From NCBI RefSeq assembly GCF_001194135.2, contig NC_068989.1:3636006-3700005 (forward strand): a stretch of DNA of 64,000 nt, written 5' to 3'. Shown here in pieces: positions 34,944 to 36,724 of the stretch. The position numbers were made by a program, and so were the translations under genes. The stretch's first letter is position 1. Each line of letters begins with the position of its first letter. Origin of the DNA: Octopus bimaculoides (Eukaryota). The notes under the pieces were generated by a model. It was not told the origin of the DNA and made no database searches. It was given only the letters and a program-made list of their open reading frames with translations.

Positions 34944-36126
34944 TTAATGTGGAGTCGAACCATTTTGAGCTGAATATGGTAGAAGGGTGAGTAGATGTGT
35001 TGTCATTCATAGTGTTGGTGTTGGTGTTGGTAGTGTTGGTGGATTTGGTGGTATAGGGAAACGTACTCATGTTGGCCGAGGTGTTGTGTAATTGGAATGT
35101 GTAGTGATGTTGTTTGGTTGTATTGCTATCGGAAGATATAATGATGGGAGGGATTAGTGTTGGACGTAGTTGTGATGTAGGTAATGTTTGTTGTTAAGTG
35201 TTTTTGATACTATACTTATTGTTATTTAACCCGTCACCTATCCCGATCAAACCTGATCAAAACCATACCTACAATCAAAAAGTATTCCAGTCATGACCAT
35301 CCTGTCCATTTACTATGAACAGGAAACCTGAGACCATACTCACTATTGTAGCATTCTCCAAGGTGGTGCAGTATGATTCGAGGAGAATGTGCTTGCTATT
35401 TTTAGCAGATCAGGTAACCAGATACAAGTTTTTTCGTTTTCGTGGGAGTATCACCATGGCAATAAGTGCTATCAGCGATGTTATGCTGCGGTGTTAACGT
35501 TGTTGTTGTCGTTGTTGTTGTTGTGTAATCCAGATCAGCTCGGATCGAACAGTCTCGTTGCACAAAGGTCGTCATTGGAACGACTAGAGGTTGTTGTTAT
35601 CAAATCTAATAATCGATCGGACCTATGATCAACAGCGTTCCAGTATTGACCATCCACTCACTCCAGACAGTTTATCTCAGAATACATTATTTAATAGTTT
35701 AAGCTGGAGTAAACATAATTAACACGCCACATCAAAAATCTAATTAGCAACGCTAACTGCTGTGTGCTGTGCATTAACCAACTCGTCATTGCTGCACTTG
35801 TCCTCGATGCAAATAAATACTTTCCATGGTGCTTTATTTCTTTCTTTGTGTTTTTGTTGGAAACAAAAATTAGATTTCTATTTTTCTAAGATTTATTTTC
35901 TTCGTTATTTTTTTTTTGTTTAGTTATTTTTTCAGGCTGAATTCTATTCCTGTTAAGTTTGGAGTTGATGTGTCACGTTTGAATTCGATCTTATTTTTGG
36001 TGTTGTCGAAGACTAATTGGCTATTCTAGCTGTGTACTTAAAGCTAAACAATGCTACATCAGTATTATTTACATTATTTACATTATTTATATTTGACGGA
36101 TATTTGTCCTCAACTTGTTTGTTGTT

Positions 36127-36172
36127 AACACAACGTTTCGGCTGATATACCCTCCAGCCTTCATCAGGTGTC
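36127..36172 (-). ncRNA. Minimal type I hammerhead ribozyme (left arm)
   Basis: Exact reverse complement of 36580-36625. Confidence 0.85.
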
Positions 36173-36336
36173 TTGGGGAAATTTCAGACCTGGGTTTTCA
36201 TTCCTAAGGTATTTTTCTATGTTATTATTATTATTATTATTATTATTATTATTATTATTATTGTTATTATTATTATTATTATTATTATTATTATTATTAT
36301 TATTATTATTATTATTATTGCTATTATTCAGGTCAC

Positions 36337-36408
36337 GGCATATGGAGTAGTGGTTAAGAGCGCGGGCTACTAACCCCAAGATTCCGATTTCGATTTCAGG
36401 CAGTGACT
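36337..36408 (+). promoter_or_regulatory. tRNA-derived head with Pol III A and B boxes (not a functional tRNA)
   Basis: A box TGGAGTAGTGG 36343-36353 (one mismatch); anticodon-like GGG-CTACTAA-CCC 36364-36376; degenerate B box TTTCGATTTC 36388-36397. Confidence 0.7.
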
Positions 36409-36579
36409 TGAATAATAATAATAATAATAATAATAATAATAATAATAATAATAATAATAACAAAAACATCGAAAAATACCTTAGGAATGAGAAACCAGGT
36501 TCGAAATTTNNNNNNNNNNAATAACAAAAACATCGAAAAATACCTTAGGAATGAGAAACCAGGTTCGAAATTTCCACAA

Positions 36580-36625
36580 GACACCTGATGAAGGCTGGAG
36601 GGTATATCAGCCGAAACGTTGTGTT
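36580..36625 (+). ncRNA. Minimal type I hammerhead ribozyme (right arm); predicted cut after 36620 (GUU)
   Basis: Helix I GACAC/GTGTT, CTGATGA 36585-36591, one extra A, helix II GGCTG/CAGCC, GAAA 36613-36616, loop-less helix III CGTT (palindrome AACGTT). Confidence 0.85.
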
Positions 36626-36724
36626 AACCACAAACAAATATCCGTCAAATGTAAATAATGTACATAATTCCTCATCTCTTGAATATAGAACTGATTTATC
36701 AGTATTGTTGTTTGGTATTCATAA

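Follow-up and report, generated by a model that had tools for sequence, protein, structure and literature searches.

Inverted pair of Penelope-type minimal hammerheads with a tRNA-related segment in an octopus genome, probably a product of Penelope-like retrotransposition

What kind of event produces a short palindromic element with a hammerhead motif on each strand and a tRNA-like segment between them, and does such an element belong to a propagating family? These questions are raised by a locus in the window, i.e. the 64,000-nucleotide stretch of Octopus bimaculoides DNA analysed here. The element consists of two minimal hammerheads on opposite strands inside inverted arms of ~250 nt, with a tRNA-related segment of 65-76 nt in the centre. 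An earlier, sequence-only reading had interpreted it as a non-autonomous, Pol III-driven unit that is copied by the machinery of Penelope-like elements (PLEs).

The direct copy runs from 36338 to 36697 on the plus strand, including a 64-nt gap artefact, and its unit measures ~293 nt after this artefact is collapsed. The inverted copy (36064-36341, minus strand) is more 5'-truncated and is joined to the 5' end of the direct copy. In both copies the order is (AAT)n, a linker of ~55 nt, the minimal hammerhead and a tail of ~45-70 nt; the tRNA/SINE-head-related segment (65-76 nt) heads the direct copy. The features are:

36058-36066, no strand: candidate left TSD, ATCAGTATT, the longest exact direct repeat of the outer flanks (P = 0.079)
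36064-36126, minus: tail of the inverted copy; it holds three GTAAATAAT-type units and an 11-nt insertion that the right arm lacks (arm alignment)
36127-36172, minus: minimal hammerhead of the inverted copy, the same in sequence as the right-hand one and matched by the strict minimal-hammerhead descriptor
36173-36221, minus: linker of the inverted copy, present once (aligned to the right arm)
36222-36328, minus: (AAT)n of the inverted copy, (ATT)n on the plus strand, opposite in orientation to 36412-36460
36329-36341, minus: inner end of the inverted repeat, CAGGTCACGGCAT (pairing against 36398-36410)
36338-36410, plus: tRNA/SINE-head-related segment (in-register alignment with genuine SINE heads of the window)
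36412-36460, plus: (AAT)n of the direct copy (sequence)
36461-36509, plus: linker of the direct copy, with GGTTCGA as a second B-box-like half site at 36498 (sequence)
36510-36573, no strand: assembly artefact of 10 N and a duplicated 54 nt (exact suffix equals prefix; single-copy in the left arm)
36580-36625, plus: minimal hammerhead of the direct copy, agreeing with all PLE minimal-hammerhead criteria of PMC4209133
36626-36668, plus: tail common to the inverted copy, with two GTAAATAAT-type units (arm alignment)
36669-36697, plus: 29 nt with no counterpart at the other end, separating the arm from the candidate TSD (flank comparison)
36698-36706, no strand: candidate right TSD, the same 9-mer ATCAGTATT (P = 0.079)
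38659-38947, minus: PLE reverse transcriptase fragment, context only (RVT_1, tblastn, tblastx)

Alignment of the arms confirmed the earlier claim that they are joined at the 5' end of the unit. The arms are 86-87% identical in BLAST, or 92.6% with each gap run scored as one event, and they differ by 10 events, among which are an 11-nt and a 9-nt indel. The microsatellite is ~107 nt long in the inverted copy versus 49 nt in the direct copy, and the tail repeat is present in three units in the inverted arm versus two in the direct arm. A variable number of tail repeats is usual at the 3' ends of retroposons. The (AAT)n tracts are mutually inverted, and hence the microsatellite is part of the repeated unit and not of the target. 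Further inward, a 13-position repeat (36329-36341 versus 36398-36410) forms 10 Watson-Crick pairs and one G.T pair. These positions either are the last ~13 nt of the head, kept in the inverted copy, or belong in part to an acceptor-like stem. The inverted copy, described earlier as head-less, is not entirely so, with complementarity that runs ~13 nt beyond the microsatellites. The element had been said to have no ORF, and 36064-36697 indeed lacks coding capacity, including for reverse transcriptase (RT) and GIY-YIG; the unit would be non-autonomous if mobile. A 63-aa frame across hammerhead, linker and head gave no candidate in a collection of 5.8 billion proteins.

An assembly gap (36510-36519) lies inside the direct copy. 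The 54 nt on either side of it (36456-36509 and 36520-36573) are exactly identical and the left arm has this segment once, and therefore the gap represents an unmerged contig overlap. The window is a draft with 26 gaps, and further 10-N gaps with unmerged overlaps occur at 11024 (194 nt) and 51027 (25 nt). The apparent 64-nt repeat is this gap artefact and not a tandem copy. The unit had been described as 357 nt long (36337-36693); its anatomy stands but its length does not, the true unit being ~293 nt, and the linker of ~55 nt is obtained only once the 54-nt duplication is collapsed.

Both hammerheads read GACAC / CUGAUGA / bulged A / GGCUGG-8 nt-UCAGCC / GAA / ACGU / U17 / GUGUU. Their cores, at 36585-36620 on the plus strand and 36132-36167 on the minus strand, are identical at 36/36 nt, with no chance matches in shuffled sequences, and the predicted cleavage sites are 36620/36621 (plus copy) and 36132/36131 (minus copy). 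The conserved core CUGANGA...GAAA with H17 (not G) is present in both copies as CUGAUGA, GAA-A and U17. The bulged A lies at 36592 and helix II (GGCUGG/UCAGCC) has 6 bp, in agreement with the minimal-hammerhead criteria of PMC4209133. Loop 3 is absent; a palindromic ACGU (36616-36619) takes the place of helix III and is directly followed by U17. With such a palindrome and no loop 3, cleavage would require the hammerhead to dimerise with another sense copy. In the window together with 120 kb of octopod DNA, the strict minimal-hammerhead descriptor matched at these two sites and nowhere else. A complete minimal hammerhead at 36580-36625, with an identical one on the other strand, was thus correctly placed by the sequence-only reading, its cleavage point at 36620/36621 agrees with the anatomy, and its attribution to the Penelope type conforms to the published definition. 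Taken together, the motif supports assignment to the Penelope-type minimal hammerheads, with self-cleavage predicted. A 52-nt block across the hammerhead is identical between the arms, but not significantly so (P = 0.068), and selection on the hammerhead is not demonstrable from two copies.

The same hammerhead variant was present in 21 metagenome contigs; scans of viral contigs and of prokaryotic genomes each gave 0 matches. The search pattern left helix I unconstrained, and the contigs and the octopus motif were grouped into eight sequence families. Six of the eight keep at least three consecutive helix I pairs with different sequences (GCC/GGC, GCCG/CGGC, CCC/GGG, UUCAA/UUGAA, GAC/GAU and GACAC/GUGUU), so that covariation, which had been proposed earlier as a check on the ribozyme, is found in helix I among loci with this variant. 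The variant adjoins RT/GIY-YIG ORFs in three animal-derived contigs (L006, L017 and L018), and in L006 an ORF with RVT_1 and GIY-YIG lies on the hammerhead strand. Contig L017 has inverted arms of 148 nt that are 96% complementary, with a hammerhead in each; the ORF piece between the arms matches the GIY-YIG region of the L006 PLE (E = 3e-17). Its topology is that of the octopus element, with a short 5'-truncated copy placed in inverted orientation directly against a longer direct one. Hence, the inverted 5'-truncated copy, which the sequence-only reading had called a PLE hallmark, is reproduced in an independent locus with a GIY-YIG ORF fragment. Upstream of the hammerhead in the 21 other loci, tRNA-type boxes were at noise level only.

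Within the window, a PLE RT fragment of ~290 nt (38659-38947, minus strand) is not contiguous with the element. It has a weak RVT_1 match, a tblastn match to the L006 PLE ORF (E = 1.6e-4) and tblastx matches to octopod PLE copies down to E = 4e-48, and its matches in the protein collection (6/6) are from annotated protein sets and all octopod. Judging from these similarities, PLEs exist in this genome. Of the two PLE RT remnants reported earlier, the one at 38.5-39 kb holds (38659-38947), but nothing at 3-4 kb was significant (E = 0.36 in tblastn to the L006 PLE ORF, and no match in tblastx to octopod PLE copies). A PLE ORF is absent between the arms and the RT fragment, where a LINE-like ORF was found, and no GIY-YIG coding sequence lies upstream of the direct copy. 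Four octopod PLE copies (L001-L004) have no hammerhead and no similarity to the arms at their 3' ends; these copies lose mutual similarity where the ORF ends, leaving no preserved 3' end to compare. The window's own ORFs had no record in the protein collection. For a comparison with an empty site an annotated host gene was sought, but no credible exon was seen in the window and none of the loci compared was collinear.

PLEs often target microsatellites; the DNA flanking the element is not microsatellite. The 9-mer at both ends is not significant as a direct repeat (shuffle P = 0.079). The 29-nt stretch at 36669-36697 is one-sided, with no counterpart at the end of the inverted copy. Craig et al. 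2021 (PMC8557442) describe PLE insertions with one-sided extensions of 30-40 bp, and also 5'-truncated copies to whose 5' end a shorter, inverted copy is attached; by analogy, the 29-nt stretch may be such an extension. The layout of the octopus element is an ordinary, known PLE insertion footprint. In each copy, 43 nt or more follow the cleavage site, which implies that the RNA that was copied had not been cut at the hammerhead. Contrary to the earlier proposal that self-cleavage sets the processing of the RNA, we infer that the ends of the RNA copied here were not set by the hammerhead.

We conclude that the element is probably an old, inert product of PLE-type retrotransposition, composed of a direct unit of ~293 nt and an inverted, more truncated copy. 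In this scenario, target-primed reverse transcription by a trans-acting PLE RT/GIY-YIG enzyme would have copied an uncleaved RNA, and the inverted partial copy would have been laid down in the same event. Against this explanation, the arms have no adjoining PLE ORF, a single locus was seen, and the arms match none of the octopod PLE copies compared, which are without preserved 3' ends. The lack of significance of both the TSD candidate and the 52-nt identical block, and the non-microsatellite flanks, also count against it.

The head of the direct copy needs separate consideration. Its A box, TGGAGTAGTGG at 36343-36353, matches at 10/11 positions, and a GGG-CTACTAA-CCC anticodon-like hairpin follows at 36364-36376. 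The A box, the anticodon-like loop and the (AAT)n are all where the sequence-only reading had placed them. The B-like box (36387-36397) matches 6/9 specified positions, i.e., it has three mismatches and not two as counted before. Such an A/B-box pair is at chance level, with 2.4 pairs expected per window, and on this pattern alone the claim of Pol III drive is not upheld. When aligned with genuine SINE heads of the window, the head matches in register (z 4.6-5.0, p 0.002-0.004), and the spacing between its A and B boxes, 44 nt, is the same as in other SINE heads there. The relation of the central segment to tRNA/SINE heads is moderately supported by these alignments. On the plus strand, TTTT is absent downstream of the head up to 37053, which agrees with the claim of no TTTT between head and ribozyme.

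Standard detectors gave negative results. Rfam returned no hammerhead and no tRNA match, either at the gathering threshold or at E<=10, and ARAGORN found no tRNA in the head at default and relaxed thresholds. However, Rfam also misses the PLE-linked hammerheads of the metagenome contigs, and Rfam tRNA and ARAGORN also miss the genuine SINE heads of the window, and therefore these negatives carry no weight. Moreover, annotation pipelines that rely on Rfam hammerhead models and tRNA finders are blind to such elements, since these tools miss both this ribozyme class and octopus SINE heads.

A tentative but possible reading takes the direct copy as a full-length representative of a dispersed cephalopod family of Pol III, tRNA-headed SINEs, which would have a PLE-derived hammerhead 3' module and would be mobilised by PLE RT/GIY-YIG. 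This reading adds to the explanation by PLE insertion and does not replace it. In its favour, the tRNA-related segment opens the direct copy and its A box lies ~6 nt away from the junction, much as an A-box-like motif is placed in the window's genuine SINE; the A-B spacing is likewise that of other SINE heads there. The resemblance to genuine SINE heads (p ~0.003) and the lack of a T4 terminator before 37053 point the same way, and if the inverted copy keeps 13 nt of the head, the template already had the head-(AAT)n-arm linkage. Sm-alpha and Sj-alpha are a precedent for a Pol III promoter combined with a hammerhead, and retrozymes have been proposed as non-autonomous PLE derivatives. Yet neither the head nor the arm gave a further copy in ~58 kb of window sequence and 120 kb of DNA from O. 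sinensis, O. bimaculoides and Argonauta, although in such a sample of ~178 kb of octopod DNA a family of thousands to tens of thousands of copies could still go unseen. The ordinary SINE reaches at least 12 copies in the same window. Other points against a family are the chance-level box pattern with 3/9 specified B-box positions mismatched, the negative tRNA detectors, and a tRNA-type head upstream in 0/21 other loci with this hammerhead. Furthermore, a genuine 13-nt inner repeat would place the start of the direct copy at about tRNA position +7, making this copy 5'-truncated as well.

It is unlikely, though the single locus favours it, that the element is a one-off chimera, in which the RT switched template from a 5'-truncated hammerhead RNA to a SINE or tRNA-like RNA and the fusion never propagated. 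U6/L1 chimeras are known products of template switching, SINE RNA should be plentiful in this genome, complex junctions are known for PLE insertions, and the similarity of the head to SINE heads equals that among different SINE heads. However, head and body are separated by (AAT)n in both copies, and 13 nt of the head seem to be retained in the inverted one, which implies that the fusion pre-dated the two copies, although a single event is possible. Moreover, the SINE families seen in the window do not include the head as a copy.

We consider it distinctly unlikely that a longer, possibly autonomous octopod PLE, with (AAT)n and an old SINE-head fragment in its 3' UTR, left both arms as ordinary 3' ends truncated on their 5' side; the direct copy would have been truncated slightly further upstream than the inverted copy. 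Exactly such a pattern is seen in L017, with ORF sequence upstream of the arm, and dispersed and opposite-strand minimal hammerheads have been ascribed to truncated PLEs (PMC4209133). On the other hand, the 5' end of the direct copy lies within a few nt of the start of the tRNA module, a coincidence under random truncation, GIY-YIG coding sequence is absent upstream, and the 3' end is not carried by any octopod PLE compared.

A foldback element or TIR-type MITE, i.e. a DNA transposon whose long inverted repeats contain a hammerhead-like motif by chance, would account for the inverted arms and the possible flanking 9-bp direct repeat, and a read-through transcript is predicted to fold into one hairpin (-287 kcal/mol). 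We regard it as very improbable: the TSD is not significant (P = 0.079), the outer ends are ragged (9-nt tandem repeat three versus two times, plus the one-sided 29 nt) with no defined TIR termini, the motif is the PLE-linked hammerhead variant, and no other copies were found in the window or in 120 kb of other octopod DNA. A falsely assembled palindrome is scarcely credible even in a 26-gap draft with unmerged overlaps at 10-N gaps, one of them inside the element, since arms that differ by 10 events, including 11-nt and 9-nt indels, and in microsatellite length (~107 versus 49 nt) are not two readings of one sequence.

The solid part of these results is that they add an octopod example to the very large, known class of dispersed Penelope-type minimal hammerheads. 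Within the literature searched, no cephalopod report of a minimal hammerhead was found, and a literal search for the element's sequence strings gave no occurrence. If the head is part of a propagating family, PLE enzymes would mobilise Pol III transcripts in trans via a short hammerhead 3' module, and the unit would provide a compact natural substrate (<300 nt) for questions on PLE RT recognition and on the role of minimal hammerheads. If the SINE-family reading is true, the octopus unit would be the first SINE to be partnered with a PLE, and it would independently parallel schistosome Sm-alpha on the basis of a dimer-dependent minimal PLE hammerhead.

Among known systems, the metazoan non-LTR retrozymes are AT-rich and non-coding, 170-400 nt long, with a type I hammerhead, and a non-autonomous origin from the terminal sequences of PLEs has been proposed for them (PMC7229834; Li, Clavereau & Pollet 2026 preprint, 10.64898/2026.07.22.740005). 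They form head-to-tail tandem arrays that are expressed as circular RNAs, usually with canonical hammerheads in invertebrates (Cervera & de la Pena 2020, PMC7229834). At ~293 nt, the octopus element is within their size range and is likewise a small non-coding unit with a hammerhead. Unlike retrozymes, it has a tRNA-like head and no tandem copy.

Sm-alpha and Sj-alpha of Schistosoma (Ferbeyre et al. 1998 and Laha et al. 2000, as summarised in PMC2770079 and PMC6765202) are SINE-like, non-coding retroposons of ~300 nt with a tRNA-derived, Pol III-type 5' module and a hammerhead. Sm-alpha has a canonical type I hammerhead, is often tandem, exceeds 10,000 copies and is recognised by tRNA finders. 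The octopus element resembles them in having a tRNA-related 5' segment followed by a hammerhead in a non-coding unit of ~300 nt. It differs in having the minimal PLE hammerhead without loop 3 instead of a closed helix III, in copies that are inverted and not tandem, in its one known locus, and in a head that tRNA finders miss.

The minimal-hammerhead class is characterised by G10.1-C11.1, a long helix II, a short helix I and no loop 3, with dimer activity implied. Opposite-strand pairs at distances of 100-700 bp have been on record since 2014, when they were interpreted as probable truncated PLEs (Cervera & de la Pena 2014, PMC4209133). Minimal hammerheads of PLEs are also the subject of Lunse, Weinberg & Breaker 2017, as cited in PMC6765202. 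The octopus motifs have G10.1-C11.1, the long helix II, the short helix I and the palindromic ACGU for helix III, and they lie on opposite strands ~350-420 bp apart. In contrast to this class, the locus lacks a PLE ORF or pLTR context, and a tRNA-related segment and (AAT)n precede the motif in the direct copy.

Compared with the insertion architecture of PLEs, the octopus element is non-coding and measures only ~293 nt, its target is not a microsatellite, and its TSD is a candidate (P = 0.079). It resembles that architecture in its possible one-sided extension of 29 nt, and in being a tail-out inverted pair whose 5' ends meet in the middle.

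The element is composed of the following features:
36064-36126, minus strand: left-arm tail
36127-36172, minus strand: left-arm hammerhead
36173-36221, minus strand: left-arm linker
after this linker, to about 36328: left-arm (ATT)n
between the left-arm (ATT)n and the direct-copy (AAT)n: central, non-repeated tRNA-like stretch
36412-36460, plus strand: direct-copy (AAT)n, followed by the linker
36580-36625, plus strand: direct-copy hammerhead
36626-36668, plus strand: direct-copy tail

This anatomy of arms, head, (AAT)n and hammerheads agrees with the sequence-only reading. Each strand of the window has exactly one occurrence of the 36-nt hammerhead core, and shuffled sequences gave no chance matches. 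Identity between the arms is 86-87% by BLAST, or 92.6% with each gap run counted as one event; because two indels separate them, they are not an assembly duplicate. The microsatellites are mutually inverted, and hence belong to the repeated unit rather than to a target microsatellite. The inverted repeat continues for ~13 nt beyond them into the head (36329-36341 versus 36398-36410), so that the inverted copy is not quite "head-less" as had been stated. If these 13 nt are part of the inverted copy, both copies contain the head-(AAT)n junction and the direct copy starts near tRNA position +7. The outer ends are unequal (three versus two 9-nt tail repeats). The right end has 29 extra nt and then the 9-mer ATCAGTATT, which also borders the left end; this flanking 9-mer is not significant (P = 0.079).

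Inside the element lies a 10-N gap (36510-36519), and the 54 nt upstream (36456-36509) equal the 54 nt downstream (36520-36573). Exact overlaps occur at three of the window's six 10-N gaps and measure 194 nt (11024), 54 nt (36510) and 25 nt (51027). Since the left arm contains the 54-nt segment only once and other 10-N gaps overlap likewise, the gap is an unmerged contig overlap, and the sequence is continuous after deletion of 36510-36573. This collapse shortens the unit from 357 to ~293 nt and yields the ~55-nt linker reported earlier, which does not hold in the sequence as assembled owing to the 54-nt duplication. The overlaps at gaps 11024-11033 and 51027-51036 are likewise exact and unmerged; features spanning 10-N gaps in this assembly therefore contain artificial duplications.

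Read by rules, the ribozyme motif is GACAC-CUGAUGA-A-GGCUGG(8 nt)UCAGCC-GAA-ACGU-U/GUGUU. It shows all four diagnostic features of the minimal hammerheads (min-HHRs) of Penelope-like elements (PLEs) listed by Cervera and de la Pena (PMC4209133), which include a G10.1-C11.1 pair, the combination of a short helix I and a long helix II, and a palindromic 15.2-16.2 without loop 3. A strict min-HHR descriptor retrieved only the element's two sites from both strands of the window and 120 kb of octopod DNA. Rfam detected no hammerhead in the element even at E ≤ 10, a result that is uninformative because it also detected none in 20 other contigs with the octopus-type motif, including those adjoining PLE ORFs.

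The pattern used to scan public metagenome contigs specified the core, helix II and ACGU and left helix I unconstrained; it yielded 21 contigs (L005-L025). Together with the octopus motif, these were sorted by flanking sequence into eight families, six of which kept at least three consecutive helix I pairs despite sequence change. Helix I thus covaries across families, and this was not imposed by the search pattern. Some of the contigs carry PLE ORFs. L006 has an ORF with RVT_1 and GIY-YIG domains on the same strand as the hammerhead, the YGLPKIHK motif typical of PLEs occurs in ORF pieces of L010 and L018, ~260 nt upstream of their hammerheads, and a GIY-YIG fragment in L017 matches the L006 endonuclease (E = 3e-17). 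The diagnostic features, the covariation and these ORFs identify the motif as a genuine minimal hammerhead of the PLE type.

The contigs with this variant (helix II GGCUG/CAGCC, ACGU) are unrelated, come from many metagenome records and most likely represent animal host DNA. In two families (L008/L009/L014/L023 and L013/L019/L021) position 17 is a G, which is expected to prevent cleavage. A second min-HHR-like motif at 1830-1862 (plus strand), CTGATGA-T-GGTT(TAGAT)GGCC-GAA-ACGT-C, lies ~150 nt upstream of the gap 2011-2244; its T is bulged, ACGT is present and the site is a canonical GUC, but helix II is wobble-rich and helix I is poor.

PLE insertions are heavily 5'-truncated, their 5' end is often abutted by an inverted 5'-truncated copy, and they often have a one-sided 30-40-bp extension (Craig et al. 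2021, PMC8557442). Opposite-strand min-HHR pairs 100-700 bp apart were ascribed to truncated PLEs in 2014 (PMC4209133). The octopus topology is reproduced in L017, with 148-nt arms that are 96% complementary, a hammerhead in each and 3' ends pointing outward. The inverted truncated copy is a PLE hallmark, as had been proposed. In L017 the longer copy runs upstream into GIY-YIG coding sequence, whereas in octopus it runs into (AAT)n and the tRNA-like stretch.

Similarity to PLE coding sequence was located as follows:
38659-38947, minus strand: PLE RT remnant, the only PLE-derived stretch found in the window
L001:9544-12218, L002:9954-11839 and L003:9954-11814: fetched octopod PLE copies, similarity from RT to GIY-YIG

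The remnant at 38659-38947 matches RVT_1 weakly, the L006 PLE with E = 1.6e-4, and octopod PLE copies with tblastx values up to E = 4e-48. It corresponds to one of two remnants suggested earlier (38.5-39 kb); the other, at 3-4 kb, gave nothing significant. A LINE-like ORF separates this RT fragment from the arms. LINE-type ORF fragments at 37070-37393 and 20174-20707 (both plus strand) include '...ISDETWEIIKA' ahead of the RT region as well as a C-terminal piece that resembles a zinc knuckle. Beside the RT fragment is a near-perfect 90-nt palindrome (38119-38208/38224-38313; 92% complementary, 15-nt spacer), and relatives of it flank the O. bimaculoides PLE copy L003 in both orientations. The copies in L001 and L002 reach the GIY-YIG region. 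Mutual similarity of the three copies stops exactly at the ORF end, and the fetched copies retain neither a 3' UTR nor a hammerhead; for this reason the arm is not comparable with an octopod PLE 3' end.

The head has three B-box mismatches rather than the two counted previously, and 2.4 A/B-box pairs of this quality are expected per window by chance, so that the box pattern alone does not support the putative Pol III promoter. Neither the Rfam tRNA model (E ≤ 10, 99 nt) nor ARAGORN (thresholds down to 70%) found a tRNA in it; both likewise miss the heads of a clearly tRNA-derived SINE that is abundant in the window (~400 nt, at least 12 copies or fragments, (GTAAAAGA)n-like tail), with many more copies in O. 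sinensis L002. Its copies include:
53040-52600, 61748-61333, 32480-32188, 17884-17496 and 44592-44202, minus strand: ~400-nt SINE

An in-register alignment of the 36.3-kb head with these SINE heads covers the D-loop GTGGTTAAGA, the anticodon arm and TTCCG..TTC; its z is 4.6-5.0 (p = 0.002-0.004 by shuffling), and the similarity is about that between two different SINE heads. The tRNA-like nature claimed for the head is in this sense retained, as tRNA or SINE-head ancestry is moderately supported by this alignment. Another tRNA-like head at 58737-58791 (plus strand), which combines a perfect A box with a two-mismatch B box 44 nt downstream, probably represents a second SINE family.

Neither head nor arm recurs in the window or in 120 kb of O. 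sinensis, O. bimaculoides and Argonauta hians, a total sample of ~178 kb that is compatible with a family whose copies number up to tens of thousands. A spurious-ORF search of protein collections found no further copies, a hammerhead pattern scan of viral and prokaryotic collections gave no hits, and an empty-site comparison through a host gene revealed neither a credible exon in the window nor a collinear site among the fetched loci. All 21 other hammerhead loci lack a credible tRNA-type head upstream.

The template would be an RNA ordered as tRNA-related module, (AAT)n, linker, hammerhead and tail, copied in trans by a PLE RT/GIY-YIG enzyme, with a second, more truncated copy laid down inverted during the same event. 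As in the sequence-only reading, no TTTT lies between head and ribozyme; the first past the head is at 37053. In both copies the shared sequence extends at least 43 nt past the cleavage site; the template was therefore uncut at the hammerhead, and processing set by self-cleavage is not supported. An uncut template agrees with reports that single min-HHRs show no detectable cleavage and that dimers are weakly active. Helices I and II form in the predicted monomer fold, whereas in a read-through transcript of the whole locus the ribozyme is predicted to be buried in a hairpin of -287 kcal/mol. With two copies, the 52-nt difference-free block that spans the hammerhead does not reach significance (P = 0.068).

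Structure, ribozyme class and PLE-type topology are read directly from the locus, and the locus is likely a PLE-type insertion of a short, non-coding unit that carries a hammerhead. Within such an insertion, a true SINE family is a tentative reading, a one-off template-switch chimera is doubtful, and a truncated longer PLE is slightly more doubtful still. A DNA-transposon foldback is very improbable, as is an assembly artefact, against which the two indels between the arms speak. The literature searched contained no description of a tRNA-headed SINE that depends on PLEs, nor of the octopus hammerhead motif in cephalopods. What is solid extends known biology to a new host, and the interesting part hinges on the genome-wide occurrence of the unit.

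Schistosoma Sm-alpha repeats have a canonical hammerhead and tandem arrays, whereas the octopus locus has neither; non-LTR retrozymes also differ from it in forming tandem arrays. The locus belongs to the PLE min-HHR class and has a PLE insertion footprint, and its sequence suggests that it works like a non-autonomous PLE derivative.
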